Positions 1 through 56,479 of a DNA stretch of 64,000 bases are shown piece after piece. The translations under genes and the position numbers were made by a program. Source of the DNA: Macrostomum lignano (taxonomy: Eukaryota); NCBI GenBank assembly GCA_002269645.1, contig NIVC01000033.1, positions 423,335-487,334 on the forward strand, written 5' to 3'. The notes under the pieces are model-generated. The model saw only the letters and a list, made by a program, of their open reading frames with translations. It had not been told where the DNA came from and did no database searches. Positions within the stretch are counted from its first letter, which is position 1, and each line of letters starts with the position of its first letter.

Positions 1-195
1 ATGTTTGAACTATTTATGAATAACTTTATTATTTTTTATGAATTTCTTTGATTGATTTTTTCACCAGCTTTTCTATCGCCCTAAAGTTCCTATGCTTTGC
101 GCATGATATTATGCAACTTATTACGCAGTAAACTCAACTCTGTTTCATGGAATCGCAACAAAGCAGGGCAACCTAACAAAACTTGGCGATTGCAG

Positions 196-3100
196 TGTGC
201 TGATGAACTCCATGGCCGCCACGCACGTTGACACGGGGCCGGTGCCCGACTACCGCAAGGAGATGGCCATCTTCTACGTCATCTTTTTCATCGTGTTTCC
301 CTTCTTCTTTGTGAACATCTTCGTCGCCTTGATCATCATCACGTTCCAGGAGCAGGGCGAGAATGATCTGGTGGACCAGGAGATCGACAAGAACCAGGTG
401 AGGGCCGCTTGACAGTCGAAGCCAGCTTGATAGTGCCGTTCAACAGGGACCTAAAGAATATTTTGAGAAACATTTTTACAGTCTGGATTATTTCTGTCGG
501 AGATCCAGGCTTCAGTTAAGACAAGGGGCCCAAAATCCTCTAGTTACCGTATCCCGTAGTTTGTTAGTCATTAATCTCAATAGCATGAAAAAAAGCAAAA
601 AAATATGAAATAATTGACAACCTGTTCGATTTGGCCCCTGATGCCAGAAATCCAGTAGCCAAATGGCAATTTTCAACAGTGTGACTTATGAAAACCCAGT
701 CAAAATTGAAGACATTCCAAGAATATTTTAATTAGAAGCCTAGATATGCAGTATTGGTTTGTTATACGGAAAAAGTACACATTGGACTCGCACAAAAGCA
801 ATATGACGTTCCTAATTCGCTCTCCACAACACAGCGCCAGTGCATTGACTTCGCCATCAACGCGAGGCCGCTGTGCCGCTACATGCCCAAGAACAAGAAC
901 TCCATCAAGTATCGAATTTGGCGATTGGTGGTGTCTACACCGTTCGAATACTTCATCATGGTGATGATTGCGCTAAATACTCTAATTCTGATGATGAAGG
1001 TAAGGGCTTGTGTCGTGATAGCCTGACTATTGCTTAAAGCAAAATCACAATTTTTATTTCATGAAAGTGAAATTGTATAAAGCCAGAATGCCTTTCTTGA
1101 ATTTTACTTTAATTGGAATTTAAATATTTTCTCCACCCACCTCACTCCCGTCCCCACGACCCTTTATTTATATACCCACCTCACTCCCGTCCCCACGACC
1201 CTTGATTTCTACACCCACCTCACTCCCGTCCTCACGACCCTTGATTTCTACACCCACCTCACTCCCGTCCCCCACGACCCTTGATGTCTACACCCACCTC
1301 ACTCCCGTCCCCACGATCCTTGATTTCTACACCCACCTCACTCCCGTCCCCCACGACCCTTGATGTCTACACCCACCTCACTCCCGTCCCCACGATCCTT
1401 GATTTCTACACCCACCTCACTCCCGTCCTCACGACCCTTGATTTCTACACCCACCTCACTCCCGTCCCCCACGACCCTTGATGTCTACACCTACCTCACT
1501 CCCGTCCCCACGATCCTTGATTTCTACACCCACCTCACTCCCGTCCCCCACGACCCTTGATGTCTACACCCACCTCACTCCCGTCCCCCACGACCCTTGA
1601 TGTCTACACATACCTCACTTCCGTCTCCCACGACTATTGTTTATTCCATCCACCTCACCTTCTTTTGATTCACCCGTACTTTCTCCACCCCTGACTCCGT
1701 ACCCACCAGCCTCTCAATTAGTTTTTTTAAATGATGACATCTATCAGGCATTATAGATAAAGTATATATTGCTTGTATTTGCTTAATATGCCACTATTAA
1801 AGTGTCTATTGCCAAAAATGCCACATGCTTGCCAACAATTTTAGCAGCTCATTGCTCTATATGCCGTTATTAAGCAATTCAAGATGTGATTTCATTATTA
1901 CCTTATAAAAGTTTCACCACCTGCTTACATAAAAAGATTATATTTACCAAGAGTACCAAGATAAACAAGTCAAACAGTCAAGTCCCCTAGCAGCTTTGAA
2001 ATTGATTAAATATGAAAATAATTTTCAGTTCCACGGTGCCAGTCAATTCTACAGCGATATAATGAGAAATCTGAATATCGCATTCACCGTGGTGTTTAGC
2101 ATTGAATGCCTGCTGAAAATGCTGGGCTTAGATATTAGGGTAAGCCCGAGCAGCCCAAAACACCTGCCGGTCCTTGAGCCTTCAACCATATATGCCGCTT
2201 CCTTCGGCTGTTTCTGTTCAGTTTTTATTCAATTTCTTTTCTGTTTTATATATTTTCTTAAATAATCTTAGAGCAGAATTAGCCAATCTTTTCATCTGCT
2301 CTGCAGCCTTTCCTAAAAAATGGCATTTAACTTTTAGTAGAGCTGCTTGAGCCTCCAACTTCGCTTCGCGAATTTGATTTCGTTTGGAAAGGTGGTCCTT
2401 CAGGCGTTAGGCCCTAAAGGCCCTAAAGGCGCAAAGCCTTTCTATCCGACCCTCGGGACCTTTGAAACTTCACAATAGCAATCTGGCCCGCTCAATGTCT
2501 ATATCTATTCTCAGCGCTCTTCTCTCTAATCTCCTCTCTCCTCTCCTATTTCATCTCTACTCTCTTCTCCTTTATTCCCTCGCCTCTCCAGCCATTGTTT
2601 TGCTTGCTAGCCTCAGCTCTGGTTAATCCAGCTTAACTTTTCTGCTTCAAGGCAGGACAGGGCAGAGTGCTCTCGAGAAAAGGAATTAGTCCTTTGTCAC
2701 GCTTGTTTCATTTCTAAACTTCGTTTTCTGAACTGAAGAGATTTTGCACCAGATCTGCAAAGCATGGCAGAGACCAACTTTCTCAGTAGTTTTGCTCATT
2801 TATTCTTTCATAGACCGTTTTTTCTTTGAATTTTATAATTAAAAAGCAGCAAAGATTGCCGGATGCAAGCAGCGGAGTGTTCAGCTAAGTTGTAGGCTGG
2901 CCCTCCCACCTATCCGACTTTGCTTAACATTATTCATTAAAGCTGAGCGAGAGAAAACTTGTAAAATCTTTCTGTGCATTTATTAACTTTTTTACCTCTT
3001 GGCTATTAAATATTTTTATTGTGCCAGCTGCTCAGTCTGAGCTAGGTTGTGCTCAAAGTAATCCTAACTGCCATCTGGAGCACCGGCCCATGCCGCAGCC

Positions 3101-6100
3101 GTGATGGCCTTCAATTTTTTGCACCGCTAGATTTCAAAGCATGTAAACTACTTATACTACTGATAACTGATTATACTACTGCCTTTGACGTACTTTACTG
3201 TAACTGGCGTACCCGCCGTGCAATTCTTTACCGTTCCTGCGCTCCTCCTCCCTCTCTGCCCCCGCGGTTGCCTGTGTGCAGTACTACAGGCGCGAGACTC
3301 AAACACTGGACGGTCTGGAAGATCCCGAGCACCAGGCGTACAAGCACTATTGCAGTACCCTGGTGTACCTCAACTCAGCCTTCACTGTCATGTTCTCTGT
3401 TGAGTGCATACTCAAAATCCTGGCATTTGGACCCAAGGTACATCGAGTTGCTCCTAACTTGCTGCAACCGGAGCCGTGCTAATTTTTTGTGGTGTCATTT
3501 TTTAATCATGGTTGCGCTGAGTCTGACGTGTTGTCCCCCGCAGTCTCCAGCCTCTAATAGTCTACACCTGTTTGGGATAGTGTTATTAATTTCTAAGCAT
3601 GCAAAACTGCTGGTGAATAATTTACTATTTTGTACATTCGGTTACGGTTATTCTAGTTAACACTCGAAATGGAACCGTTTTATACACAGTATTTACATGT
3701 GATTGACTATCCCAGTGTACCCGACATCACTCACTGTACTCCTGTTTTTCGCACATTTGTGGGGAGTTCAACATAATGACATTACTAATTGCAATTATTC
3801 AAATGCGTAGATTTTGACACAAATAGGGTAGCAAAGGGAATTATACCCAGTGGCTCACCATCGCCCTGAGCATTCATTAAATTTGCACTTGACAGACAGC
3901 CTGTCCATAAAATATCCTGCACATTGGCTGTTTAAGCGCATGCTTTCACACTCGTATGTGAATGATTGAGCGACCCCAGGGCCCTCAAAGTTCACGTTGT
4001 CTGAACCCTGCAGTCTTGACGTCGGCAATGCGTGCTAGTTGTTGTCGCTGTTGTCGCGATAAAGTGTATGCGGATTAACAGTTATGCTGGGCCCTATCTG
4101 ATCCAGCATCCAGCTCTAGATGCAGCACTTTTTACGGATTTTTTCTTTGTTACCAATATCATATGTAGGTGAATAGTGACTTGATAGGGAACATCTATCT
4201 AGTGTTAAACAAGCGAGATATGCGTCATATTCTGATGTCTTACATACATTACTAAAGTTTTCAGGCTGTCAGACACGTAAGTCTTTTTATAGCATAAATA
4301 CCTATTTTATCCGGCATAATATGTTGCTCAATAACTTTTAACAGCCAATCGGCATTCGCTGCACTTTTATGAAAAATTCAAGTTGCAGAAATTTCTGCGC
4401 ATGCCAGACTGTATCTTCTAAAGATTTCCAAACGTCACGTTGCTTCACCAAATTTTAGAACTACTTCCGAGACAGATGGAACATATTCGACTTTATCACA
4501 GTCATTGGCAGCATCACAGATGTACTGGTGTCGGGATTACAGGTAATGCTTCTTGACAGGTGAAGCTCTATCCCTATCCTAGCCACCTTTGTAGAGACTA
4601 GACAAGATCACACCAAACACATCGAACCACATGAAAACCCACCAGACCAGATCACACCAAACACATCGAACCACATGAAAACCCACCAGACCAGATCACA
4701 CCAAACACATCGAACCACATGAAAACCCACCAGACCAGATCACACCAACACCAGACCAGACCAGACCAGACCAGACCAAAATGTCATACCTGCTGCAACT
4801 CACTGCTCAACGCCTCCAACCTCAACCCTGCACCGCACTGCAGCAACAAAGCTTCCTCAATCTCGGATTTCTTCGTCTATTCCGAGCCGCCCGCCTCATC
4901 AAGCTGCTGCGCCAGGGCTACACAATCCGCATCCTGCTGTGGACGTTCATCCAGTCTATCAAAGCCCTGCCGTACGTCTGCCTGCTCATCATCATGCTGT
5001 TCTTCATCTACGCCATCATCGGCATGCAGGTGTTCGGCAACATCAAGCTGGACAATGAGAGCGACATCAACAGGCACAATAATTTCCAGACGTTTCTCAA
5101 GAGCCTCGTGCTGCTGTTCCGCTGCGCCACTGGCGAGTCCTGGCAGACCATCATGCTGGCCTGCTCAGCTGGCAAGGACTGCCAGCCTCCGCCATCCACG
5201 AAGGATAATCCATACTCACCTAGCGATGAAACGGGCAGCACCTGCGGCAACAACATCTCCTACATCTACTTTGTTTCCTTTATCTTCTTTTGCACATTTC
5301 TCATGCTCAACCTGTTCGTGGCCGTCATCATGGACAACTTCGACTACTTGACCAGGGACTCCTCAATTCTGGGCCCGCATCATCTGGACGAGTATAGCAG
5401 AGTGTGGGCCGAGTTCGACCCCGGTGCGACGGGGCGAATCCACTTTACGGAGATGTACGACATGCTCCGCAACATGGAGCCGCCCGTCGGGTTCGGCAAG
5501 AAGTGCCCCTACCGCTTGGCCTACCGGAAGCTGATCCGCATGAACATGCCAGTGGACGAGAACAACACCGTGCACTTCACCACCACCCTGTTCGCGCTCA
5601 TCCGCGAGTCGCTGAGCATCAAGGTGGACGCGGTCGAACTAATGGACAAAAAGGACGAGGAGCTGCGCGTGAGCATCCAGAAGATGTGGCCGCTGCGGGC
5701 AAAGAAATGCCTCAACAAGCTCGTGCCGCCCGACGAAGGTGCGTTAAAGTTTTGCATGTCCTCATGGATAGTACGAAACCCACACGAATAGCAATTCCAA
5801 GCACACATTGAGCATTCTATTGCTACATATTCTTGTAACTGAACGAATTCTCTCTCTCGAAGAAATGGTGCAAAGCAGACACCGATCAAAGCTAGTCCAA
5901 ATGGATCTTATCCAATCCCCTAGGAATATGGAGACCTTTAATTGAATAACTCAACAGAAATCAACTGATCGATAACGGCTGGCAATGACTCAGCTCTCAG
6001 TAATCAAATAACAAGGGTTTCAACAAAGGCTTACCGATCGGTATACACTTCTCCCAGAGATGTAGCCTCGATTTAGGAGTAGTTCTTGATCGGTCTCAAG

Positions 6101-9100: not shown

Positions 9101-12100
9101 CGGATCAGAAACCTTACATAGAGCTTTCTCTAAACCAATGTGTTTTACCTATCTGCATTCTTAGACTTTACTGCCCTTCGGTCCGCCTAAATTTAAGCAT
9201 GTTTTAACCTTAGACCATATTAAATTGCTATTAAATTTTAGCATCGACCGGCAGCCGGGCGAGCCAACCAAGAAGTCATTCTCATTCTTGGGCCGCGGCG
9301 GAGGAGCCGACAGCCGGAACAAGGAGCCCGGAGAGAACCTTACGGCCCAGGTGAGCCACTTGATGGCGAATTGATAGCCAATTGAATAGCACCCAAAGCG
9401 TACTGATAGTGTTACTACAGATATGCCCAGGCTTACATATTTTACAGATTTACAGTAGTTTCGATCTAAGTCTTAAATCATCGAATGGAATCTGAATTTA
9501 CACAATGTGTGAGCGGTGGCTTTGGACCCGGGCCCCTCCTCACTCCGAACAGAGGCTCTCAGCCAATGAACGGTGGCGTTGGACCCGGGCCCCTCCTCAC
9601 TCCGAACAGAGGCTCTCAGCCAATGAACGGTGGCTTTGGACCCGGGCCCCTCCTCACTCCGAACAGAGGCTCTCAGCCAATGAACGGTGGCGTTGGACCC
9701 GGGCCCCTCCTAACTCCGAACAGAGGCTCTCAGCCAATGAACGGTGGCTTTGGACCCGGGCCCCTCCTCACTCCGAACAGAGGCTCTCAGCCAATGAACG
9801 GTGGCGTTGGACCCGGGCCCCTCCTAACTCCGAACAGAGGCTCTCAGCCAATGAACGGTGGCTTTGGACCCGGGCCCCTCCTCACTCCGAACAGAGGCTC
9901 TCAGCCAATGAACGGTGGCTTTGGACCCGGGCCCCTCCTCACTCCGAACAGAGGCTCTCAGCCAATGAACGGTGGCTTTGGACCCGGGCCCCTCCTCACT
10001 CCGAACAGAGGCTCTCAGCCAATGAACGGTGGCTTTGGACCCGGGCCCCTCCTCACTCCGAACAGAGGCTCTCAGCCAATGAACGGTGGCTTTGGACCCG
10101 GGCCCCTCCTCACTCCGAACAGAAGCCCACAGCCAATGAGTGGTGGCTTTGGGCATGAACCATTCGGACTGCAAAGAGGGCCGCAGCCAGTGCAGAGCCC
10201 CATTCATGGGATTGTCCAGTAAGACAGTAAGGATAAAACTGCTTTCAGCTTATTAAATTAAAATGTTGCACAAAACTTTCCAATTGCAGTTGTACAATCG
10301 CATTTGGCAACGGATCGATAGGGTACTTTATTTCTAATCAATCTTCTTCCTAATTCGGTGTTGGGTAGCAAAAGGTCCAATAATTTTAAAGAAAATTACA
10401 TGATATTTGCGCATGTAAACATACATACACATATGTTAGCGTACCTGGGTGTTTATGCGGTTCAATAATTCTCTGTAATTAACGATATGGTATCGGGTAA
10501 ATGCGATGACCTGCACTCTATTGTAACTGCTATTGGCGAGGTAATTCCGTTTCTCTCCTGGGCCCTCCGAATCCACCGACTTCATTGCCGATTCAAACGC
10601 TAAAAACGCAGATTTCCCTGCCGTGGCAGCGACAGCCACCGCCTGCGCAGGATTCGAGCCCTGCAGACGCCTCCACTGAGCAGCGCATCTGAGTCTGAGT
10701 TCGCTTAGGAGCTGATTTTAATTAAGTAGGCGGTGTCTCGAAGAGTTAAAAAATATCCAGGAAAGCTGTTCGTTTTCACAGGTTCGGGAAATTTTTTTAC
10801 AGGAGCCAAGTTTCCTTCAACACAAGCCGCTCCGCCGCTTCTTTGCATTTCTTGAATTTGGTGACGGCCTCAGTTGCTCAGACCCAGCTTTCAGATCAAA
10901 TTCAAAGCGCCAGAAAGTCGCAGACTTCCCGCAATAGGATTTTACACAAACTGAAGTTTCCCCGCTAACCCCTTTCTCCGGCAAATGGTTTTAAGGTTTT
11001 ACTCGATGCTTTGCTGGTCAGTTCACATCTCTGTAACCCTGCTTTTCATATCATGAAACCGCTCGCCGTTCAACAGTACAAGCACGGCAACCTGCGCAAC
11101 TATCTCGACTCAAGCCCGACCCCGTCGCGTCCAACATCTCCGTCGCCTCATTATCATCATCAACCGTATCGTCAACACCAGGCGCCCGCCGGCTACCCCG
11201 GGCCGGGGATGGCCTCGAGTCCGTTCGGAGCCGCTGCAGCAGGTGGGTTCGCGCAGGCGGTGTCGAGCATGATTGACCAGGCCCACCAGCTGGCCGAGAG
11301 GGAGCGGCGGGAGCGCTATTTTGGTGAGTTGGTCGCCTGAGTCCTTATAAGGTTGAGTCTGAACTCAAGTTTGAACCCCTTCGTTCGCTAAACCACCATG
11401 GCACCAATCGCCCCTCGCAAGAAAAGTCGTTGGACGCATATTGATGGACAGCAAGACTATGAGCCACAATCTTTATAAACATCGAAAAATTCTAGTAGAT
11501 ATCTCTAGTCAGCATTGACAAGCTCTAGACAACAATGACAAATTCTAGACAATCGAGACAAGCTCTAGACAACAATGACAAACTCTAGATAACAGGGACA
11601 AGCTCTAGACAACAGAGACAAGCTCTAGACAACAGAGACAAGCTCTAGACAACAGAGACAAGCTCTAAACAACAGAGACAAGCTCTAGACAACAGAGACA
11701 AGCTCTAGACAACAGAGACAAGCTCTAGACAACAGAGACAAGCTCTAAATAACAGAGACAAGCTCTAGACAACAGAGACAAGCTCTAGACAACAGAGACA
11801 AGCTCTAAACAAGAGAGACAAGCTCTAGACAATAGAGACGAGCTCTAAACAAGAGAGACAAGCTCTAGACAACAGAGACGAGCTCTAAACAACAGAGACA
11901 AGCTCTAGACAACAGAGACGAGCTCTAAACAACAGAGACAAGCTCTAGACAACAGAGACGAGCTCTAAACAACAGAGACGAGCTCTAAACAACAGAGACA
12001 AGCTCTAGACAACAGAGACGAGCTCTAAACAACAGAGACAAGCTCTAGACAACAGAGACAAGCTCTAGACAATAGAGACAAGCTCTAAATAACAGAGACA

Positions 12101-15100
12101 AGCTCTAGACAACAGAGACAAGCTCTAGACAACAGAGACAAGCTCTAAACAAGAGAGACAAGCTCTAGACAATAGAGACGAGCTCTAAACAAGAGAGACA
12201 AGCTCTAGACAACAGAGACGAGCTCTAAACAACAGAGACAAGCTCTAGACAACAGAGACGAGCTCTAAACAACAGAGACGAGCTCTAAACAACAGAGACA
12301 AGCTCTAGACAACAGAGACGAGCTCTAAACAACAGAGACAAGCTCTAGACAACAGAGACAAGCTCTAGACAATAGAGACAAGCTCTAGACAACAGAGACG
12401 AGCTCTAAACAACAGAGACAAGCTCTAGACAACAGAGACGAGCTCTAAACAACAGAGACAAGCTCTAGACGACAGTGACAAGCTCTAGACAACAATATTG
12501 GCTATAGTTTATTAGTGCATTATAATAGTATACTCCAATGCTGCCTTTTGTAAATTGGGTTAAAAACTATTCAAGATTCCTACTAAAGTTTCTCAGAGCG
12601 AAAAGTAATCATTAATCAGCATTAAATTTATAGGCCTGCTCAGTAGCAGTGCGCTCATTAAATATATATGGATATTTTTAAAACTAAAAAAAAAACTATT
12701 TTTAAAACGTGCAGTCCGACAGTACTACTCCACATAAAACGCGGTTCATACTACTCATGAAAAACTATTTGCATGAGCCATGCCTGCTATTGTCAGTCAA
12801 GAGAGTCTCAGTTACTGCCGCGTATTAATCGATAGCATTTGCATTGATGAACATGTGACATGCGTCATTAGCTGTTTGTCTGACTTTCGATCCGCTTAAC
12901 GCTTTGCAGTCCACGTCTCTTTCTTGCCGCCCCCAGTCTGTGTTGGTGTTATTTCGAGTACATGATGTTATACATGATCTTTTGCTTGAAGAAGCGACCG
13001 CATTGTTTCTATCATAATTAATAACATTGTGTAAAGCAATTAATTAAATGTTGTGAATCTTCTTTTTAACCTATTTGTTTTACTCACCGCTGATAGGGTC
13101 TCAGATTGAGGTTGTCGCAAACCTTCCGCTAAACAACAGCCCACTTCTAACCTTGTATTTCAGGGGTACCTCCTCGGAGTTGAGTGATGCTTCACTCCGT
13201 GGAATTGCAAGATAATTTAGTTTGAAATTTCCAGTTAAATTTCAAGGGTCTCCTCTCTGAAAATGATTGATAATACTGCACAGACAACGGCATTACTGAG
13301 AGCATTCGATGTCTCATAGAATTTCCTCGATTTTGTTTTAATGCACCGGTTGTTCACGCGTGCTTTCGTCCCGTCACGTCGGTTTAGATACTTGTTTTGC
13401 TGATCAGCTGCAGCGAAGCCCTTAAGGTGTAAAATATGCCAGGAACCTTTCAGGGGCTGGCGGTAGCACCGGGCAGCAGCGCCCAGCAGTGTGGCGTACG
13501 CAGAGGGGGGCAAGAGGGGGCAGAGGGGGCAGAGGGCAGATGGGGCAGAGGGGGCAGAGGGGGCAGAGGGCAGAGGGGCAGAGGGCAGAGGGCAGAGGGG
13601 GCAGAGGGGGCAGAGGGCAGAGGGGGCAGAGGGCAGAGGGGGCAGAGGGGGCAGAGGGCAGATGGGCAGAGGGGGCAGAGGGGGCAGAGGGTGCAGAGGG
13701 GGCAGAGGGGGTAGAGGGGCAGAGGAGGCAGAGGGGGGCAGAGGGGGGCAGAGGGGCAGAGGAGGCAGAGGGGGCAGAGGGGGGCAGAGGGGCTGAGGAG
13801 GCAGAGGGGGGCAGAGGGGCTGAGGAGGCAGAGGGGGCAGAGGGGGCAGAGGGGCAGAGGAGGCAGAGGGGGGCAGAGGGGGGCAGAGGGGCTGAGGAGG
13901 CAGAGGGGGCAGAGGGGGCAGAGGGGGCAGAGGAGGCAGAGGGGCAGAGGGGGCAGAGGGGGCAGAGGGGGCAGAGGGGGCAGAGGGGCAGAGGAGGCAG
14001 AGGGGGGCAGAGGGGGGGCAGAGGGGGGCAGAGGGGGCAGAGGGGCTGAGGAGGCAGAGGGGGGCAGAGGGGGGCAGGGGGCAGAGGAGGCAGAGGGGGC
14101 AGAGGGGGGGCAGAGGGGCCGGTGGGCTCCTTCAAACTCCAAATGAAAGAGGCAGCAAAGTTCGAACTTTACCACCTCTTGGACTTGGCATCCACCGGCC
14201 CAGAGGACAGGGGCGCTCACCAATGTACAGGGGCGCCAACCAGGACCCCGAATACTGGCGCCATTTAGGTTAGGGTCCAATTAAAATCCCTGCATACGCC
14301 ACCAGGCGCTTAGATCTTTGTTTTACTTTTCAACATCGATGTTGTGTCTCGCATAAGCGTAGAAATGTAGATTTACACTCGCAATATGATTATGAATGAG
14401 TAGTTTAGTATTTACAATTTTCACTTTCGTGCACCGTATTTTCTGTCTTGGCCGTCCTGCAGACTGAAATATGCTGCTCGGCTCATCGTCCATTTGCCCC
14501 GACATCAGTTTCCATACATGTGCGCAAAATTCAGCCGTAAGAACTCGCCAAAATTGCTCATTGCTCCTTTGTCTACTTTTGGATATCGGGGAATAAATTC
14601 CTCATATTGGTGACGGTCAGATTTCTAATTTTGCTCATTTCCACGGGAATCCGGCCCCTCAAGGATGCGTTGGTGTACCAGAAATTTTATTCAGAGGCAC
14701 CGCTCAGACACGGAAGCACCGGTGGCTGTAGAGGCACTTTCACCAGCAGACTTTGGTTTCCATGCACTATTATTAGTTACTGACGCTCTGCGCCAGCTGC
14801 CGCCTCTCGCAATACGGCACGAGGTCACTGCAGCTGGCTTTGCGATGCGCACAAGCTTGTTTTAGCCAATTGGCTTCCTTAAACTGGGCCTGCATCGCGA
14901 GACCAGGTTATAAGCACCTTGGCAACACGAATTCTAACTGTACATATTTCCACCTGCCGCGGCACCCCTCAGGTCGCGGTCAGCGGTCCGACGACTCGGT
15001 GACCAGCAGCTACCAAAATCATCATCAGCAGTCCGGCCGCCAGATGCCGCCTCGAAGCGGCTCCACTGCGCGCCAGCAACCGCTCAACCCAAAGCAGCAG

Positions 15101-15388
15101 CAGCAGCAGCAACAACAACAACAACAACAGCAGAAGCAGCAACAACAACAGCTGCAGTTTCAACAACAACAACAACAACAGCAGCAGCAGCAGCCGCAGA
15201 AGCAGCAGCAGTCCCAGTCCCTATCGGCACCGCGGCCCGAGCTGTCTCAGGCGATGCGTGCCACTTCGCTGGAGTCGCGTTCGAAAACGCCCTCGCCGTC
15301 GAACTCGCCGCCCCCGCTGTCGCAGCCGGTGCCGATGCTGCAGCAGCAGTCGCGCCCAGCGCAAACCTTTCAGCATCCGCAGTACCTT

Positions 15389-15436
<48 letters not shown>

Positions 15437-16405
15437 CAACAACAGCTCGCAGCGGCAGCAGCAGCGAGGAAGCCTCCACCACCAAGCAGCTTGAACCTGC
15501 GCCTGCCAGACGACCACGACCGGATGCCGCACGTCCTGCCGTCGCCGACGGTTCAAACTGGCGTCGCTGGCGCCACCGGCGGCCGGCACGGATTTTGTTC
15601 GCCGTCTGGCATCAACTTTCCTCGGCTGAACGCGTCACCGTCTCGACCACCAACACCGCCGTCAATGTCGCCGACGCCGTCGCTGTCCTCGCCGACGCAG
15701 TTTGGGCAGCTGCACCACCGACGACGACAGAGTCGCCGACTCAGGAGGTTGGACCGGGTGCCCAGTCCGCCGCCCGAGCAGCTTCTAGATGATCTCAACG
15801 AGTTCGACGTCGTCATGGAGGAGTACGAGATGGGCGGCATTTCCGGGTCACTTGTTGACGAGGAGCTCGACGCGGAGGTCGACCAGCTCGAACCGGACGA
15901 GGACCTGATGGTTGAAGAGTCGATAGCTTCCGACGCCGACCTACGCCTGGTCATCGACGCTTCAATGGTCGAAGCGGGTGACTACGACGACATGTCACCG
16001 CCCATGATGCCGCGGGCGAGGCGGTCGGTGCAGCAGCCGCAGATGTACCATCGGCAGTCGCAGCCCTATCGGCACCCGGCGCCGCCGTCCCGTGGATATC
16101 AGGCGGCCGCCGAGCGGCACCCCGCCTACCCTCCGTCCTTCAACTCAAGCCGTCATCAAAGCTCTCTCGGCGGAGCGGCCTTGCGATCGTCGCAGGCCTC
16201 CGCAGCCGGTCTGCCGCCGCCGCAGCCGCATCCGGCGAACTTCCCGATGCCATTGGCGCCGCCACCGCCGCCGCCGCGCAGACATCAGCAGCAGCAGCAG
16301 CAGCAGCGGTACCCGTTCTATGTAGCCTCTGGTCGACCGGCGGCCATGACGATGTCGGCACGTACAGTCGAGGCCCCGGATGATGAGGGGGCTTACTGGT
16401 GCTAG
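196..16405 (+). CDS. Cav2: Voltage-gated calcium channel alpha1 subunit, Cav2 type (cacophony/UNC-2/CACNA1A-B-E family), 3' half; 5' part lies outside the window
   Basis: Phase-consistent exons: 196-397 (IIIS6, [18 protein letters not shown]), 835-999 (III-IV linker, IVS1), 2029-2139 or 3282-3437 (IVS2), 4459-4542 (IVS3), 4844-5738 (IVS4 [13 protein letters not shown], pore [12 protein letters not shown]6, EF-hand, pre-IQ) and 6657-6757 (IQ). The IQ region [15 protein letters not shown] is Cav2-type rather than Cav1-type. Less certain exons: 6987-7046, 8550-8662, 9242-9350. Then 11077-11323 ([13 protein letters not shown]) and terminal exon 14973-16405 ending in WC-stop. Confidence 0.95.
1131..1640. 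repeat. About 39-40 bp C-rich intronic minisatellite
   Basis: Unit CACCCACCTCACTCCCGTCCCCACGACCCTTGATTTCTA, about 12-13 copies, in a Cav2 intron. Confidence 0.95.
2029..2139 (+). CDS. Cav2 alternative exon A (IVS1-S2 loop plus IVS2, short loop)
   Basis: ttttcag|TTC...AGG|gtaagc, 111 nt, phase 0-0. Encodes [37 protein letters not shown]. Confidence 0.85.
3282..3437 (+). CDS. Cav2 alternative exon B (IVS1-S2 loop plus IVS2, long loop)
   Basis: gtgcag|TAC...AAG|gtacat, 156 nt, phase 0-0. Encodes [52 protein letters not shown]. Confidence 0.85.
4606..4779. repeat. 44-bp tandem repeat (3 copies) followed by (CCAGA)n
   Basis: GATCACACC starts at 4606, 4650, 4694 and 4738. Confidence 0.9.
9515..10150 (+). 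repeat. 57-bp in-frame tandem repeat, 11 units (GG[F/V][16 protein letters not shown]); possibly coding
   Basis: Perfect 57-nt period with no indels, inside ORF 9485-10222. A degenerate 12th unit continues in frame. Confidence 0.9.
11517..12496. repeat. 20-bp minisatellite
   Basis: Unit GACAAGCTCTAGACAACAGA, about 48 copies, in a Cav2 intron. Confidence 0.95.
13487..14305. mobile_element. Degenerate hAT-like MITE enclosing the G-rich repeat
   Basis: Inverted termini GTGGCGTACGCAG (13491) and CTGCATACGCCAC (14290-14302). Flanks GCGCCCAG and GCGCTTAG match 6/8 as a possible 8-bp TSD. Confidence 0.45.
13501..14117. repeat. (GGGGGCAGA)n-type purine-rich microsatellite
   Basis: Runs of G3-G7 separated by CAGA over about 600 bp. 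Confidence 0.95.
15094..15445 (+). repeat. CAG/CAA polyglutamine tracts in the Cav2 terminal exon
   Basis: Q13-K-Q5-LQF-Q11 at 15094-15200 and 15 uninterrupted CAG codons at about 15389-15433. Confidence 0.9.
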
Positions 16406-18194
16406 GGCTTTTGCGACTCAAAAATCCATTAACAGATACTCCAGCCCATTTGAGAGGCGCGTGCTAAAGCCTGGCGTTTGAAATTGAAATAAGCAAAGCT
16501 TAAATATCGAATGGCATTCGTGACAGAATACAAAGGCCGAGCGCATTCACCACCTCATCAGACGCGATCCAGGCTCCCGCACTCGCCCGATGCTGTTTCT
16601 TGGAGAGGCAATTATAGCTAAATTTGCATAGAAAATTGCTAAAGTATTAACTAAAAACCATTTTCAAAAACCCATCTGCATCCATCTACTACGATGTAAA
16701 CTGGTTGTTGCTTTGGCATCTGAGGTTTCACGCGCTTTGCCATTAATTAGCAGCCAAATAAAAATTGATTCCTTGCTGATCTTGTTTCCCAATTCTGCGT
16801 TGATAAACTTGGCATTAATCCAACTGTTCCTAGCGGCTTCAGTTTCTGCTTGCGCTGCTGCTCCAATAAGCAATCTAGTTCAACTTGCGACTGCATTCAT
16901 CACCATATTCATAGCCAGCATCTTCTCATTCTGTGTTTCTGGTCAAACTATAAAAAAGTATTTTCGCATTGTTATAACAAAAACTGTTTCTCGTATTTTT
17001 TCTCTTGCTTGCTAATCTGCTAATCTGCGTACAATAAATAATCCCTTGTCAGCCAATAGTCGCTAGACTGTGCGGACGGCTTATCGCGTGTATAAAAATG
17101 CTCCCCTTATCCCCCCGCCGCATGCACAGTCCAGGTGTGAAAATGAAAGTCGCACGTCTTTCCGTTTTGCATTGGCTAGGTTTGGACACTGCTAACTAAT
17201 TACCTATGCTAATTAGCCTGCGCGTACATAGGAATATTGTCTTGTTTTGAGCAGCCATGTATTTTATATAATTAATATGCCGCTAAACACTTTCCTTCTG
17301 CCAATTCGAGTATGAATATACAAGCGGGACGCTGGACTCGGGCTGCATCAGGTTGGCATGCCAGAAGCCAACAAGATGCGCTCGAGACACACGCGTCCCT
17401 CACTACTAGCAGTAAGCAGCAGCAATCCCAATAGAGAGTTTTTTCATTGCTTATTGATAACGCATTACTGAAACCGATATAGCAAGCCCTGATTTTCTAT
17501 TTTCCAGTTTAATAAAAGTCTTACCTGTTCATATTGGGCGGCGATTGATAAAAGTTCTGCTAAATATATGCATAAGCCGACTATAAATTCACTAATAATA
17601 ACTGCATTGGTATATACTAGCATATAGCATGAACTTGCATTGTCTGTCTCTCTCTTATTTACTCAAAGCAATAAAATTATAAAATAGTTAGTTTAATTAA
17701 AATCGCAATTTATTATTTGATATTATTACTAAGCGATCAGGATTATAAATTGCTCCAGGTCTTATTATTTAGGTAATATAATTATAATAACACAGTACAG
17801 ATTTTTTCAGTTACTGGTAGATGGAATGTTAAAGCCAGGTGCTGATGGCACAGCCTGAACAGCCCAGATTGGTATAAATTTAGCAGTTACAACGTACACA
17901 AAAGTACACAACTCCCTCTTAGAAACTTTGTAAAACAGATATTTACAAATACAGCCAAAAGCCTATTAGTTTGAAAAGTTTTTCGAATTTTTAAGCAATA
18001 TTGTCTGTTTAGGCTACTACTTTTAACAAAAGTAGCATGATGTGCGTTTACGAAAAAACACATTTTTAGTAGTGAATAAGCAAGAGGGAATGATGAGGCG
18101 AAGGAGAGCAGCATGGTTACACTAGATAAACACACGAGTCACAAGCAGACTTAAACAAGTAAACTTGGTAACATTTCTTTCCTACAACGCCAGG

Positions 18195-19750
18195 GTCAAT
18201 TCAAGTCCCAACAACAGAATCCCGAGTCCCAATTCAAGTCCCAACAACAGAAGGCCGAGTCCTAATTCAAGTCCCAACAACAGAGTCCCGAGTCCCAATT
18301 CAAGTCCCAACAACAGAGTCCCGAGTCCCAATTCAAGTCCCAACAACAGATTCCCGAGTCCCAATTCAAGTCCCAACAACAGAATCCCGAGTCCCAATTC
18401 AAGTCCCAACAACAGATTCCCGAGTCCCAATTCAAGTCCCAACAACAGAATCCCGAGTCCCAATTCAAGTCCCAACAAAAGGATCCCGAGTCCCAATTCA
18501 AGTCCCAACAACAGAATCCCGAGTCCCAATTCAAGTCCCAACAACAGAATCCCGAGTCCCAATTCAAGTCCCAACAACAGGATCGCGAGTCCCAATTCAA
18601 GTCCCAACAACAGAATCCCGAGTCCCAATTCAAGTCCCAACAACAGAGTCCCGAGTCCCAATTCAAGTCCCAACAAAAGGATCCCGAGTCCCAATTCAAG
18701 TCCCAACAACAGAGTCCCGAGTCCCAATTCAAGTCCCAACAACAGAATCCCGAGTCCCAATTCAAGTCCCAACAACAGGATCGCGAGTCCCAATTCAAGT
18801 CCCAACAACAGAATCCCGAGTCCCAATTCAAGTCCCAACAACAGAATCCCGAGTCCCAATTCAAGTCCCAACAAAAGGATAACGAGTCCCAATTCAAGTC
18901 CCAACAACAGAATCCCGAGTCCCAATTCAAGTCCCAACAAAAGGATCCCGAGTCCCAATTCAAGTCCCAACAACAGAGTCCCGAGTCCCAATTCAAGTCC
19001 CAACAACAGAATCCCGAGTCCCAATTCAAGTCCCAACAACAGGATCGCGAGTCCCAATTCAAGTCCCAACAACAGAGTCCCGAGTCCCAATTCAAGTCCC
19101 AACAACAGAGTCCCGAGTCCCAATTCAAGTCCCAACAACAGAATCCCGAGTCCCAATTCAAGTCCCAACAACAGGATCGCGAGTCCCAATTCAAGTCCCA
19201 ACAACAGAATCCCGAGTCCCAATTCAAGTCCCAACAACAGAGTCCCGAGTCCCAATTCAAGTCCCAACAACAGAATCCCGAGTCCCAATTCAAGTCCCAA
19301 CAACAGAGTCCCGAGTCCCAATTCAAGTCCCAACAACAGAATCCCGAGTCCCAATTCAAGTCCCAACAACAGGATCGCGAGTCCCAATTCAAGTCCCAAC
19401 AACAGAGTCCCGAGTCCCAATTCAAGTCCCAACAACAGAGTCCCGAGTCCCAATTCAAGTCCCAACAACAGAATCCCGAGTCCCAATTCAAGTCCCAACA
19501 ACAGGATCGCGAGTCCCAATTCAAGTCCCAACAACAGAATCCCGAGTCCCAATTCAAGTCCCAACAACAGAGTCCCGAGTCCCAATTCAAGTCCCAACAA
19601 CAGAATCCCGAGTCCCAATTCAAGTCCCAACAACAGAGTCCCGAGTCCCAATTCAAGTCCCAACAACAGAATCCCGAGTCCCAATTCAAGTCCCAACAAC
19701 AGAATCCCGAGTCCCAATTCAAGTCCCAACAACAGAGTCCCGAGTCCCAA
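18195..19750. repeat. 33-bp minisatellite directly 3' of the claudin stop codon
   Basis: Unit AGTCCCAATTCAAGTCCCAACAACAGAATCCCG, about 47 copies, with variants confined to a few positions. Confidence 0.95.
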
Positions 19751-19754
19751 AAGC

Positions 19755-20537
19755 TCAAACGGCGCTGTCGCTCTGCCCGCCGCCGCCGACGCCGCTAAAA
19801 TATCGACCGCCGCCGGCCTCCATAAATTTGTCCTGACCGCTAGCGCCGCCGTAGCCGCCCATCGGCTGGGACGCGGCTGCCGCGCCGATGTCAGGGCCGG
19901 CGTCGGTGACGTCGCTGAAGACGAGCTGCTCCTCGTCCTCCTTGATGTACATCATAGCAAGGAAGCCGACGGTGAAGGTGCAGGCCAGGCAGGCGATGAG
20001 AGCCATGGCGTAGGCGAACCCTAGCCGGTTCTGGTCGGGCCGCGGCATCCAGCGGCGGTCGCGGCTCTGGATGGCCATCACAATGAGCTGGAAGGCGATG
20101 CAGGCGCCGGCTAGCAGGTGGAAAATCGTGTTGGCACGCAGCCAACGCTTTGAGTCGCGATTCAGCACGCGGACAAACTGCGAGCCCATGGCGATGGTGG
20201 ACAGCAGGATGGAGATGAAGGCGACAATGCCCAGCATCTGCACAGCGTAGTACCAGGGTGGGATGAGCCAGCTGCTGATGCGGGAGAACTCCGGGAAGTA
20301 GATGTACCAGCAGCCGAAGTAGGCCTTGGACACGTAGTCTGTGGGGTGCAGGTAGCCGTCAAAGCAGACCTCCCACAGGCCGATGCGCAGGAACTGGCTG
20401 TGATACTCCGGCTGCGACTCCAGCCAGTGCGGCGATACGAAAGCTAAGAAATATGTTACCATGGCAACGCAGCAGAACAGCAGGGCCAGGTGGAACATGA
20501 GGTTGCGCTGCCGGTTGTCCGACTGGAGCGCCTTCAT
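19755..20537 (-). CDS. PMP22/claudin family tetraspan protein, Megatrachea/Pickel-like septate junction claudin
   Basis: Four hydrophobic segments. First loop SPHWLES...GLWEVC...GC...WLIPPWYYAVQ carries the claudin W-GLW-C-C signature. C-terminal class I PDZ ligand DSAV. Single coding exon; an in-frame AG lies 27 nt upstream of the ATG. Confidence 0.88.
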   Translation of the reverse strand: MKALQSDNRQRNLMFHLALLFCCVAMVTYFLAFVSPHWLESQPEYHSQFLRIGLWEVCFDGYLHPTDYVSKAYFGCWYIYFPEFSRISSWLIPPWYYAVQMLGIVAFISILLSTIAMGSQFVRVLNRDSKRWLRANTIFHLLAGACIAFQLIVMAIQSRDRRWMPRPDQNRLGFAYAMALIACLACTFTVGFLAMMYIKEDEEQLVFSDVTDAGPDIGAAAASQPMGGYGGASGQDKFMEAGGGRYFSGVGGGGQSDSAV

Positions 20538-22129: not shown

Positions 22130-23245
22130 TCAGAAGCCGTACTTCCTCTGACTGCTTCGCTGATTGAAGCGCGCGTCAGACCAGGAGTTCTTCAGCTCCA
22201 GCTCGCGCTCCTTGGCCTGATAGGCCAGATAGGTGATCTGGTGCTTCCGCTTAGCCAGCGAGCTGGGCTCGGGGCCTTCCGGCTTGCGCCTCGCATCGGC
22301 GCCGGCGTTGCGAGTCAGCTGTTTCGTCAGCTCGAGCTCGGCGCCGGCCACCTGGTCAGACTGTCGGATGTCGATGATTCCGCCGCTGCCAGCGTCAGCG
22401 GCGACGTCGGCGGTGAGCGAGGCGCCGGTGGCCTGGCGGTAGCGGTGCAGCTCGCTGGGCGGCAGGACGGCGCCAAGAAGGCTCTGCTGCTGCGGCAGGT
22501 TGGAGTCGGCAGGCTCCGCGGCAAACGGCGCTTCGTCATCCACCATCGAGGATGTCGCCGCTGGCAGTTTCGGCGCCGGCGGACTCGGTGGCCGGATTGT
22601 CGGCCGCATCGGCGGCACGAAGACGCGCCCGGCGCCCTCGCGGACGGCCAGCGCCTTGGGCTTGGGCAGCTGCGCCAGCAGCGACGTGGCGCCGCGCATC
22701 TGGCCGGCGGCGGCGGCCGACGCTATCCGGCGACGCTTGACCGCGTCCTCGTCGTCTTCATCGTCGTCCTCGTCAGCGCCGTTGGCGGCAGCGCTCGGTT
22801 CCAACAGGAGAAGTCGGCGGCGCTTTTGCTGCAGCAGCAGCTGCTGTTGCTTCTGTCTTTGCTGCTTCTGCTGAGCCAGCGATTCGGCCGCCGCGGCTGC
22901 TGGCTCCGCCGAAGTCCCCGACCCGGATGTCGCTGGCGCCTGGGCAGACGCGGGAACGCGCATTCGCAGATTCTCCTCCACAGTGTCGTCCGCGGCTGCC
23001 ATCGCGGCCAGGCCATCGGCTGCCTCGTCGCCGCCACCGCCCGCCGCCTCCTGCTGGCGCTCCGCATCGTTCTGGACTGCTTCGGCTTCGTCATCGGAAA
23101 TGACGGGCGCCTCCTCGGTGTCAGTGCCTGCCGGCTCCTCTGCTGCCTGCCTGGCTGAAGATTCCTTCTCCTCCTGTTTCTGCTGCTGCTGCTGCTCAGC
23201 GTCTGACTCGGACTCCGAGTCACTGTTCTCGTACTCCACAAGCAT
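22130..23245 (-). CDS. PRCC: Proline-rich protein PRCC homolog (spliceosome-associated), single exon, 371 aa
   Basis: N-terminal MLVEYENSDSESE and diagnostic C-terminal RKHQITYLAYQAKERELELKNSW...KYGF. Confidence 0.93.
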   Translation of the reverse strand: MLVEYENSDSESESDAEQQQQQKQEEKESSARQAAEEPAGTDTEEAPVISDDEAEAVQNDAERQQEAAGGGGDEAADGLAAMAAADDTVEENLRMRVPASAQAPATSGSGTSAEPAAAAAESLAQQKQQRQKQQQLLLQQKRRRLLLLEPSAAANGADEDDDEDDEDAVKRRRIASAAAAGQMRGATSLLAQLPKPKALAVREGAGRVFVPPMRPTIRPPSPPAPKLPAATSSMVDDEAPFAAEPADSNLPQQQSLLGAVLPPSELHRYRQATGASLTADVAADAGSGGIIDIRQSDQVAGAELELTKQLTRNAGADARRKPEGPEPSSLAKRKHQITYLAYQAKERELELKNSWSDARFNQRSSQRKYGF

Positions 23246-24380: not shown

Positions 24381-24447
24381 CACTTGTGAAGAGCTCTGGA
24401 TTTGAATTGTCAAACGCAGTACTGTGCTCAACTGGATCTGGATTCAA

Positions 24448-27400
24448 ATGGATGGCGGGCTCAAACCCCCAAAGCCATTCTGCTTTGATGAGCACAAGGC
24501 GGAAAACTGGAGTAAATGGATTTCTGCGTTCGAGCTCTATATGACTGCAACCAAGCGTGACGAATCACCGGCTAAAGTGCAAATAGCGACACTGCTAACA
24601 GCCATCAGAGAAGAAGGTCGTGAGATTTATTCAACTTTCGAGAAATCGGAAGGAGACGAAGAGCTGTCGAAAGTGACGAAACTGTTCGAAGAATATTGCA
24701 AGCCGAGTGCGAACGAAACTTTCGAGCGCTACAAATTTCGGCAACGCAGGCAGAACGAGCATGAGAGCATTGACTCATTCGTCAGCGGCCTGAAACAACT
24801 TATCAAGACATGCTCATTCGAGAAGCCAGCCTACGAATTGACGGTGAACGAATCAATAATCAGAGATCAGATTGTCCTCGGAATCAGAGACACAGAGTTG
24901 CGAGAACGGCTTCTACGTGAGCAGGAGTTGACGCTAGATAAGGCTATATCTATCTGCCGTGCAAGTGAATCATCTAAGACCCAAGTGCGGATCATGACGG
25001 GAAACACCTCCGGTGGGATTTCGAAATACATCCAGAGAGAAGTCAGTTCTGTTGTGAAGCCTCGCTCAACAGGCAGACCAGATCTCAAGTACAAGGAGAG
25101 ACGACCGAACAAAAGGTTTGGGTCCAATGGAAAGCCGATGGTAGAAAAGTCGGAGGGTTGCTCATTCTGTGGTAAGAAACACAAGAAAGGTTCATGCCCT
25201 GCATATGGCAAGACGTGCAAATCTTGCGGAAAGCAAAACCACTTCAGCAACGTTTGTCGGAATAAGACCGTAAGAGCCTTGGATCGAAATACAAATGAAA
25301 GCTCAGAATCTGATCGTCAAGATTCGTGGGTCATGTCAGCATCTCTGCGACCGGGTGGCAACGACAGAGACAGTAGAACAACTGTTGGTATCAAAATCGA
25401 AGGTCAGCTGGTGAATTGCAAATGCGACACAGGAGCGGACGCAAATGTACTCCCTGAACATCTGCTTAGGCGGATTGCACCAAACACGTCGATACAAGCA
25501 ACGTCTTGCAGACTCTTTTGCTATAAAAGGTCGCGCCTAACAGTCGCAGGGAAGGTACAATTGAAACTGGAATATGAAGGAGTCAAGCATGAAAATGAAT
25601 TTATTGTGATTAAAGAGAGGCTCATTCCACTCATCGGATGGAAAACTGCAGAAAAGATAGGCCTGGTGAAATTCAACTTCGGAGTTTCTGTTCAACCTGA
25701 AGGGTTTAAGTCCACGTGGACAGATGAAAGATTTCTTCGAGAGTATCCCGATGTCTTTGAAGGAACAGGTTGCTTACCTGGGAGTTATCACATCAGCCTG
25801 CGCGATGACAAAGAATCTTGGACGGATCGCCCTCGAAGAATCCCGTTTGCAGCAATGCAACCTTTGAAGGCTGAATTAGATTGCCTGGTTTCGGATGGAC
25901 TCATCACCAAGTGTGATGAGCCCACGAAGTACGTTTCAAATGTGGTCGTCGTCTGGAAGGCAGACAAGACTATACGTCTTTGCCTAGACCCTCAGCATCT
26001 GAATGCCAACATATTGAGAGAGCAGTATCAGATACCGTCTTATGACGAAATTATTGCAGAAATCGGAAACGCTGCTCTGTTCTCAACTTTTGATGCGACT
26101 GCGAGTTTTCACCAGATTGCATTGGATTATGAAAGTTTGTTGATGACGTGCTTTCACACACCTTTTGGACGATATCGTTGGCTGAGAATGCCCTATGGAA
26201 TTTGTTCCGCATCGGAAGTCTACCAGAAGCGAGTTCGGGAGGAGATCTCGGACAAGATCAGAAACTGCAACAATTTTATTGACGACTTCATTGTTTGGGG
26301 CAAGACTGTTGAAGAACACGATGAAGCTGTGAAGCAGCCTATGGAAATGTGCCGTGCGAAGAATTTGCGCCTGAATTATAAAAAGCGGAAAGTCGGATTG
26401 AAGGAATTGAAATTCCTCGGCAACATACTTTCGCACACCGGAATTAAAGTCGACCCAGACAAAGTAAAAGCAATGCGCGATATGCCCCGACCAGATACTC
26501 TATCCGGCAATGAGAGAAAGCAGCAACTTATGCGATTTCTAGGATGTGCAAATTTTTTGTCCAAATTCATTTCGGATCTGTCATCTAAGGCAGCACCGCT
26601 ACGCACATTGCTGACAAAGAATGCTCAGTGGAACTGGACAAATGAACACGAAAAAGCGTACGAATCAATTTTGCAGAGTCTTTGCGACGCACCAGTCTTA
26701 GCTCGCTATAACCCGAATGCACCACTTACTCTGTCAGTCGATGCTAGTCAACACGGTCTCGGAGCAACTATCCTGCAAGATGGACACCCGCTGGAATACG
26801 CTTCGTCATCACTGACGCCATCCCAACGGAAGTATGCTCAGATCGAAAAGGAACTTTTGGCTATTGTGTTTGGCTGCAAGCGATTCCACCAGTACGTCTG
26901 GGGACACAAGGTAACGGTCGAGAGCGACCACAAGCCGCTAGAGAACATCTTCCGGAAGCCAATTTCAACTCTTACAGCAAGATTGCAGAGACTGATGCTA
27001 CTAGTTCAGAAGTACGACCTGCACATTATATACGTTCCCGGTAAAGACTTGCACATTCCAGACACTCTAAGCCGCGCTTTCTTAAAGAACGTACATGCCT
27101 CTAAACAACTCGAAGATGACATCGAAGGTCACGTGCTCGGTGTTAGAATGTCGGTTGGATTCCCAGAACTGATGCAGAAACTGGAAAATGAAACGGCAAA
27201 GGACTCAACACTGCAACAACTCGCTGAGATCATCGGTGTTGGTTGGCCTCACCACAGAAGCCAGCTCGTGACTGAGCTTCGTTGTTTCTGGAACGTCAGA
27301 CATGATCTGACTGCGCATGGCAATCTGATCTGGATGAAGAACCGAATAGTCGTTCCAAACTCAATGAGAATGGAAGTGCTACAGAAGCTGCATACTAGAC

Positions 27401-48696: not shown

Positions 48697-55630
<6,934 letters not shown>

Positions 55631-56128: not shown

Positions 56129-56479
56129 TTAAGCCGGCTCCTTCGTGGAGCTGTCAACCCAGTTCAGATAGGCTGGCAGGCCATCCTGAATAGGCAGAGA
56201 AATCACCTCCGGTACATCGTAGCCGTGATTGGCTTTCACATAGTCAGTGAGGCTGGAGAGCAGGCCAGTGCGAGTCTTGATGATGAGCAGCAGTTCGCTG
56301 TCCTGCTCAACCTTGCCCTCCCAGGCGTAGACTGAGGTGACCCCGGGCACAATGTTCACGCAGGCTGCCAGCCGCTCCCCAACCAAACCGTGGGCCAATT
56401 TTTCACCAACCTGCTGATTTGGCACAGTCACATATACTACTGAGTGGCTGTTAGTAGTAGTTGCACTACTAACGGACAT
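56129..56479 (-). CDS. CUTA: CutA divalent cation tolerance protein homolog, 116 aa from the likely ATG
   Basis: YVTVP...LAACVNIVPGVTSVYAWEG...ELLLIIKT...HGYDVPEVI...YLNWV. An AG acceptor 10 nt upstream of ATG 56479 makes the longer ORF start at 56644 doubtful. Confidence 0.95.
   Translation of the reverse strand: MSVSSATTTNSHSVVYVTVPNQQVGEKLAHGLVGERLAACVNIVPGVTSVYAWEGKVEQDSELLLIIKTRTGLLSSLTDYVKANHGYDVPEVISLPIQDGLPAYLNWVDSSTKEPA

Follow-up and report, generated by a model that had tools for sequence, protein, structure and literature searches.

Whether one calcium channel gene can carry two interchangeable versions of a single voltage-sensor helix, and how old such an arrangement would be, is the question raised by a 64,000-nucleotide (nt) stretch of the genome of the free-living flatworm Macrostomum lignano (contig NIVC01000033.1 of assembly GCA_002269645.1, positions 423,335 to 487,334 of the forward strand; hereafter the window). 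A first-pass annotation of this stretch had noticed two homologous exons, at window positions 2029-2139 (exon A) and 3282-3437 (exon B), each of which encodes the second transmembrane helix of domain IV (IVS2) of a Cav2 channel. We consider it likely that exons A and B are alternatives to each other at a single position of the transcript, and that each mature mRNA of the M. lignano Cav2 gene contains one of them. The Macrostomum pair is a flatworm instance of the Cav2 IVS2 alternative-exon design that is already documented in molluscs.

The Cav2 locus and its two IVS2 exons

On the plus strand, window positions 196 to 5739 comprise a series of successive exons from the alpha1 gene of a voltage-gated calcium channel; their translation extends from IIIS6 to part of the IQ region. 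The exon at 196-399, which encodes IIIS6 and the start of the III-IV linker, is a 100% tblastn match to residues 1160-1226 of the M. lignano protein model A0A1I8J3F4. It is followed by a constitutive exon at 835-999 (translated as RQCIDF...LILMMK) that encodes the end of the III-IV linker and IVS1, shares 80-89% identity with the counterpart exon at seven other flatworm loci and ends with the donor AAG/gtaagg (the slash marks the exon border, here and below). The intron 5' of exon A (1000-2028) holds a tandem repeat at 1128-1634, in which a 39-nt unit occurs 12.8 times with 92% matches. Exon A encodes 37 amino acids (aa), comprising a canonical IVS1-S2 loop, IVS2 and the start of the S2-S3 linker, and ends with ...GLDIR. 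After an intron of 1142 nt (2140-3281), exon B encodes a 52-aa form of the same segment with a long loop, which belongs to what is called here the AFGPK class. The intron 3' of exon B (3438-4458) leads to the constitutive IVS3 exon at 4459-4542, which starts with NYFRDRW and was placed by translation and by mapping of the M. lignano model. The intron before the IVS4 exon contains, at 4600-4778, 3.4 copies of a 44-nt unit followed by (ACCAG)n. The large exon at 4844-5739 encodes IVS4 to IVS6, the pore loop with the selectivity-filter sequence TGESW, the EF-hand/GPHH region and the start of the IQ region, and the Pfam families Ion_trans, GPHH and Ca_chan_IQ each scored above their own cut-offs on 4844-5737.

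Additional 3' exons reach about 11.3 kb when the long model A0A1I8J3F4 is mapped back to the window. The window carries the gene from IIIS6 onwards, and coverage of all four domains is seen in A0A1I8J3F4, which is an imperfect automated model. This model ends with ...ERYFD, mapped to 11074-11322, before a long, polyglutamine-rich open reading frame (ORF) on the plus strand at 14840-16405. The latter is without a Pfam match and terminates with ...DDEGAYWC and a stop codon; by its sequence, it appears to be the genuine Cav2 C-terminus, which usually ends in a PDZ ligand (...WC).

Translation and splice borders agree with the first-pass annotation that exons A and B are both phase 0-0 exons that contain the motif N..FT..FS.EC.LK, with exon B exactly 15 residues longer than exon A. 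Exon A consists of 37 codons (111 nt) and is bordered by ttttcag/TTC...AGG/gtaagc, and exon B consists of 52 codons (156 nt) and is bordered by gtgtgcag/TAC...AAG/gtacat. All four borders conform to AG/GT, and each exon alone preserves the reading frame between the IVS1 and IVS3 exons. The splice-site strengths are distributed differently over the two exons: exon A has a strong, consensus-like donor and a modest to weak polypyrimidine tract, whereas in exon B the polypyrimidine tract is good and the donor weak. Speculatively, such strengths would fit control by splicing factors. A profile built from canonical IVS2 exons found exactly two IVS2-like exons in window 1-6000, A and B, and no third one. 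The two are 52-54% identical over IVS2.

Among solved structures, the best match of the A isoform was domain IV of human Cav2.2 (7mix, 506 bits), followed by Cav2.3 and Cav2.1, with Cav1 channels scoring at most 395 bits and Nav and Cav3 channels about 250 bits. The B isoform gave the same ranking. On these matches the gene is a Cav2 alpha1 gene, and the earlier assignment to Cav2 is upheld. The A isoform aligns with human Cav2.2 domain IV without a gap; for the B isoform, 15 residues of the S1-S2 loop have to be bridged by a gap. Exons A and B share the S2 gating residues (F and E of FS.EC.LK), and the S2-S3 linker reads MLGLDIR in isoform A versus ILAFGPK in isoform B.

The two isoforms would differ only in voltage-sensor domain IV, with differences expected outside the cell in the surface formed by S1-S2 and inside it in the S2-S3 linker (GLDIR versus AFGPK). 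Isoform A would have the canonical short S1-S2 loop. In isoform B, the loop would be longer by 15 residues and would carry a conserved D...Q.Y..YC..L motif that probably extends the S2 helix outwards. When the isolated sensor was modeled with AlphaFold2, four helices (S1-S4) were predicted for either isoform alone, and in the B model S1 and S2 were extended and linked by about eight residues; the mean predicted local distance difference test (pLDDT) scores of 60.7 (B) and 68.8 (A) make these models good for secondary-structure hints only. Given that the S2 gating residues are kept in both exons, modulation is likelier than loss of function, and the effect expected from the sequences is shifted domain IV gating or altered contacts, not an on/off switch. 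Such modulation might act on domain IV gating itself, on the extracellular surface or on what the S2-S3 linker contacts in the cytoplasm; the changes in gating, toxin sensitivity or extracellular partners proposed in the first-pass annotation are speculation. To our knowledge, the effect of swapping IVS2 together with its loop on a Cav2 channel has been measured by nobody.

Conservation, precedents and age of the two exon types

An exhaustive phmmer search of 1.84 billion proteins with exon A alone returned 54 matches at E<=0.001, and those inspected were S2 segments of four-domain channels. The top matches came from other invertebrates and were genomic ORFs consisting of one exon with identical borders. 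Exon A resembles the vertebrate sequence FYGASVAYENALRVFN... as well as many invertebrate single exons with the same borders, retains the N, T, F, E, L and K that hardly vary among canonical exons and is without a stop codon or frameshift. Its GC content at third codon positions (GC3) is 0.57, compared to a GC content of 0.41-0.45 in three flanking introns. A GLGLR ending similar to its own occurs in canonical exons of other animals (P0224). By its sequence, exon A is of the ancestral animal type. The sole near-identical match in the exhaustive search was M. lignano A0A1I8G0I3, with its cluster mate A0A1I8J3F4. The exon A protein sequence is identical in these UniProt models. Elsewhere, the models and the window differ at two positions (S/T swaps in both cases), which points to a different allele, gene copy or assembly, either of the same species or of a very close one. 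We also considered that exon A had been copied in recently from elsewhere, which was unsupported: no closer A-like sequence was found among the 1.84 billion proteins.

Exons of the B type were identified in annotated proteins of Hymenolepis, Schistocephalus, three species of Paragonimus, Protopolystoma, Cichlidogyrus and Schistosoma mattheei, and these proteins span both neodermatan Cav2 paralogs. Over its full length, exon B is 58-64% identical to the single IVS2 exon of Hymenolepis, Schistocephalus, Paragonimus, Protopolystoma, Schistosoma and contig L004. Eight aligned flatworm B exons share 20 invariant columns (Y1, D14, Q18, Y20, Y23, C24, L27, N31, AFT, F38, E41, LK and AFGPK), and the Macrostomum exon B matches all 20 of them. 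In the flatworm B loop, the first part is variable yet polar and charged, and the part next to S2, including the cysteine, is fixed. Exon B also fits the broader pattern of the AFGPK class, i.e., a start with [FY][YH], the sequence ..Y..Y[CSA]..L...N..FT..F..E..LK..AFGPK and a loop longer than that of the 37-aa type.

Tandem homologous exons that swap one voltage-sensor helix are known in Cav1.2 (encoded by CACNA1C), in which exons 21/22 (IIIS2) and exons 31/32 (IVS3) are mutually exclusive. The Cav1.2 pairs are like exons A and B in that they exchange one sensor helix of a four-domain calcium channel. They differ in belonging to a vertebrate Cav1 channel, in affecting another helix or domain and in being of equal lengths without a loop extension. 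Among invertebrates, the Cav2 gene cacophony of Drosophila is likewise diversified by mutually exclusive exons, of which one pair lies in a voltage sensor and alters activation voltage and localization (PMC11828482). The only pairs reported for cacophony are, however, IS4A/B and I-IIA/B, which are located in S4 of domain I and in the I-II linker rather than in IVS2 (PMC11828482).

The closest precedent is found in molluscs. Splice site 4 of Aplysia Cav2 is a mutually exclusive IVS2 pair that was confirmed by polymerase chain reaction (PCR), and the paper lists counterparts in Crassostrea and Octopus as well (Dunn et al., 2018, Sci Rep 8:3263, PMC5818475). The two Aplysia forms are TIVLMMK/FDPKESRQSRRREKGEDAARILHLINTVFTSLYGLGFLLKLCAYGK/NYFHD and TIVLMMK/KYGTSDTYKEVLKYLNAGFTALFTIECTIKILGTGAR/NYFHD (supplement of PMC5818475). 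Like the Macrostomum pair, the Aplysia pair belongs to a Cav2 gene, lies between the borders ...LMMK/ and /NYF.D and covers the S1-S2 loop, the whole of S2 and the start of the S2-S3 linker. The short Aplysia exon encodes 37 aa and ends with R, as exon A does, and the long exon contains a charged loop and ends with K, as exon B does. A mutually exclusive IVS2 pair, which is absent from the known pairs named in the first-pass annotation, is already in print: its borders coincide with those in Macrostomum, and it too combines a short with a long exon (PMC5818475). There are also differences. The Aplysia pair is backed by transcripts and PCR, whereas the Macrostomum pair is known from genomic sequence. 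Moreover, the molluscan long exons (FDP.../FEP...YGLGF/YALEF...CA[YF]GK) are without the AFGPK-class motif that Macrostomum exon B possesses, and they share 35-52% identity with exon B over the S2 core.

In the sea slug Elysia marginata (BMAT01000582.1), three tandem IVS2 exons were found, at 1941-2048 and 3270-3380 (both short and ending with R) and at 5901-6026 (long, ending with K), followed by the IVS3 exon at 12170-12244. This is one IVS2 exon more than in the published Aplysia pair and, likewise, one more than in Macrostomum. The genomic order of short before long is the same as that of A before B in Macrostomum. The annotated Elysia protein GFR68872.1 (96 aa) fuses two of the three exons. 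Gene models of Timema stick insects (P0254 and P0225) also contain, in a Cav2 gene, two tandem 37-aa IVS2 exons, the first ending with ...AFGVR and the second with ...AFGYK.

Scanning of public metagenome contigs with the B-exon alignment returned 30 loci. Many of them contain a 42-43-aa exon of the form [FY]Y...[AS]Y..Y[SAC][DE][TS]L.[YL]LNM.FT..F[ST]IE[SC].LK.LAFGPK, which by its sequence is a non-flatworm AFGPK class. In two metazoan contigs, L017 (JAAUXT010015290.1) and L020 (Ga0081606_1008909), an A-type exon is followed in tandem by an AFGPK-type exon, with clean phase-0 borders. In a neighbor-joining tree of the last 34 residues of the IVS2 exons (34 aligned positions), all AFGPK exons, from flatworms and non-flatworms (L013-L022) alike, formed one clade with 64% bootstrap support, and the A-type exons of L017 and L020 fell outside this clade, among the canonical exons. 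Only the A-type exon of L020 grouped with Macrostomum exon A, at 24% bootstrap. The molluscan long exons adjoined the AFGPK clade at just 9% bootstrap on these 34 positions.

Given that exon B clusters with non-flatworm AFGPK exons and that two contigs have an A-type exon upstream of such an exon, the duplication is ancient and not a recent local event. The A/B pair thus seems, judged from these alignments, to be older than flatworms. The description of the two exons as duplicated holds in the sense that they are a homologous pair, and fails as far as it suggests a recent local duplication. The presence of AFGPK-class exons in non-flatworm contigs also led us to reject the idea that exon B is a flatworm invention that arose by duplication of exon A.

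Other contigs contain the exon types in separate genes. In a set of JGI contigs (L008/L009, L016/L019/L021/L022, L023-L028 and L031-L037), at least three Cav2-like genes, distinguished by their IVS1 exons, were recognized. Each of these genes has a single IVS2 type, which is either canonical (...GFGLR), of the AFGPK class or a 42-aa form (FYDGPRKEKYQTYN...GFGIR). From their sequences, these genes may be paralogs that divided the exon types among them. Several of the JGI series are probably metagenomes of gutless-oligochaete symbioses. In two further contigs, a weak second S2-like match (14.5 bits) precedes the actual IVS2 exon by about 250 nt (L029, 3498-3542; L030, 4347-4391); this match may be a decayed alternative exon.

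Probable alternative use of exons A and B and competing explanations

Each of exons A and B supplies an entire S2 helix, so that a working channel can hold just one of them. A mature mRNA would join the donor at 999, common to both exons, to exon A or to exon B, and then that exon to the common acceptor of the IVS3 exon at 4459. The first-pass annotation had stated that the two exons must be alternatives. The topological part of that argument stands, as each exon encodes the whole helix; mutually exclusive use in Macrostomum itself is what we infer from it. Several observations weigh against this reading, and they are considered here together with the explanations that they would favor.

Both public models of the M. 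lignano protein, A0A1I8G0I3 and A0A1I8J3F4, contain exon A directly followed by exon B after LILMMK, as would be the case if the two exons were spliced in together and domain IV of the channel thereby gained a helix. The fused models show that the raw sequence does not forbid the joining of exon A to exon B, and this joining is in frame and easy in terms of splice-site strength, given the strong donor of exon A and the good acceptor of exon B. However, the 24-helix architecture of four-domain channels is established, and an extra transmembrane helix would invert S3 to S6 of domain IV and break this architecture. Both models are plainly automated: A0A1I8G0I3 reads past the exon B donor into the intron, and A0A1I8J3F4 (1889 aa) has six Ion_trans stretches instead of four, as well as a second tandem duplication, of domain II S3-S4, at residues ~545-625 (outside the window). 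From its sequence, the domain II duplication is probably another alternative exon pair that was fused by the predictor. Similar merging of IVS2 exons is seen in the gene models of Elysia and Timema, and PCR in Aplysia detected one IVS2 exon or the other. Given the conflict with the 24-helix architecture and the automated origin of the models, the fusion of A and B is treated here as an annotation artefact, and we regard joint inclusion of the two exons in a channel as very improbable. A looser form of exon choice, in which A-only and B-only mRNAs are accompanied by unproductive forms with both exons or neither that lower channel output, would draw on the absence of any detectable enforcing mechanism. 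Both exons are multiples of three, and double inclusion or double skipping would not trigger nonsense-mediated decay (NMD); nothing would therefore remove aberrant combinations. None of the mechanisms considered, i.e., steric constraint by the intron, U2/U12 mismatch, competing RNA pairing and frame-shift with NMD, was recognized at the A/B site. Steric exclusion is dismissed because the 1142-nt intron between A and B is too long, and all introns at the site are of the GT-AG type. With regard to the docker/selector elements that the first-pass annotation proposed to seek in the introns, an inverted-repeat scan of 1000-4458 found short AT-rich arms only, which were 74-92% complementary, and the longest perfect Watson-Crick/GU runs between introns (13-14 nt) were equalled or exceeded by 3-16 of 30 shuffles, so that no pairing beyond the shuffled controls was detected. 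Regulation of the choice by proteins is possible. Such leaky splicing is in our judgment unlikely, given that only two single-exon forms are reported for Aplysia (PMC5818475).

The remaining explanation is that exon A is a dead or dying relic that is skipped in all or nearly all transcripts, with exon B used constitutively. Flatworm loci from Hymenolepis, Schistocephalus, Paragonimus, Protopolystoma, Cichlidogyrus, Schistosoma and a Logan contig (n = 7, L001-L007) were fetched, at which the introns between the IVS1 and IVS3 exons range from none (Cichlidogyrus) to 4.5 kb. A B-type exon is present at all seven loci, and at none of them did tblastn and profile searches find an exon of the A type in the interval from IVS1 to IVS3. 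The search of related flatworm Cav2 genes for both exons, as proposed in the first-pass annotation, thus yielded B but not A. Exon B alone is thus enough for a working channel. Exon A itself has the unusual linker GLDIR, which deviates from the usual AFG/GFG motif, as well as a weak polypyrimidine tract and the lowest of the valid GC3 values obtained for the exons. Two word-indexed protein searches with A/B isoform peptides returned no Macrostomum sequences, a result that is uninformative, as these searches also missed the UniProt models and listed proteins up to ~420 aa only, and their negatives say little for long proteins or for M. lignano. On the other side, exon A is free of stop codons and frameshifts, has an intact AG and a consensus-like GT and keeps all the near-invariant canonical residues. 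The tandem arrangement in L017 and L020 indicates that exon A has been recognizable since before the flatworm radiation, and an unused 111-nt exon would not persist so long, which argues for its use. Its protein sequence is also unchanged in the M. lignano UniProt models, and the GLGLR ending elsewhere (P0224) makes its linker less exceptional. A very recent loss of function of exon A is conceivable from the sequence, but an exon A that is already a relic is improbable, and we retain the reading that exons A and B are used as alternatives.

The parasitic flatworms would then represent a different outcome. The IVS2 exon of their Cav2A/Cav2B genes is clearly the counterpart of Macrostomum exon B, with the invariant motif D..Q.Y..YC..L...N.AFT..F..E..LK..AFGPK. 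It is, however, constitutive and without an A-type partner, whereas Macrostomum has both. On the basis of these sequences, parasitic flatworms appear to have lost exon A and kept exon B alone.

Neighboring features of the window and significance of the pair

Apart from the channel exons, the window contains several long ORFs made of short peptide repeats (e.g., SPNSSPNNR units) and open on both strands, at 9485-10222, 13422-14280, 18165-20024 and 34601-38427, which are most likely minisatellites rather than genes. On the plus strand, a retrotransposon polyprotein ORF of 1301 uninterrupted aa with RVT_1, RNase H and integrase domains (24424-28329) is adjoined by a 355-aa mariner/Mos1-like transposase ORF (29170-30237). 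Minus-strand features are a claudin/PMP22-like protein (19755-20537), a PRCC homologue (22130-23245), exons of a tubulin-tyrosine-ligase-like gene (48697-55196), CutA1 (56129-56644) and a zf-met zinc-finger protein (62615-63109). Large minus-strand ORFs at 35.8-46.1 kb had no Pfam match.

Regarding the Cav2 gene, what is new here is evidence for the antiquity of the IVS2 pair, for the loss of the canonical exon in parasitic flatworms and for the mis-annotation of the site in public models. The M. lignano Cav2 models are wrong at IVS2, where the alternatives are fused, and the same error occurs in Elysia and Timema; cloning or modeling of these channels needs the isoforms to be separated. Macrostomum is a tractable laboratory animal that would allow the canonical sensor and that of the flatworm type to be compared in one genetic background. 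Parasitic flatworms have the long-loop form alone, and its conserved extracellular motif, which contains a cysteine, is missing from vertebrate Cav2 channels. Host and parasite hence differ in a part of a neuronal channel that is exposed.

The data hint that the alternative-exon module is old and was repeatedly lost or split among paralogs. A broader and tentative reading of the sequences, for which we would put the chances slightly below even, is that the A/B pair is an ancestral spiralian, and possibly protostome, splicing module that is hundreds of millions of years old and was resolved differently by lineage. Under this scenario, the alternative exons would have been kept in Macrostomum, in the animals represented by L017 and L020 and probably in molluscs, exon B alone would have been kept in parasitic flatworms, and the types would have been spread over separate Cav2 genes in annelid-like genomes. 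If this reading is true, S2 of domain IV would be a tuning point of presynaptic calcium channels that is both long-standing and selectable and that vertebrates do not have.

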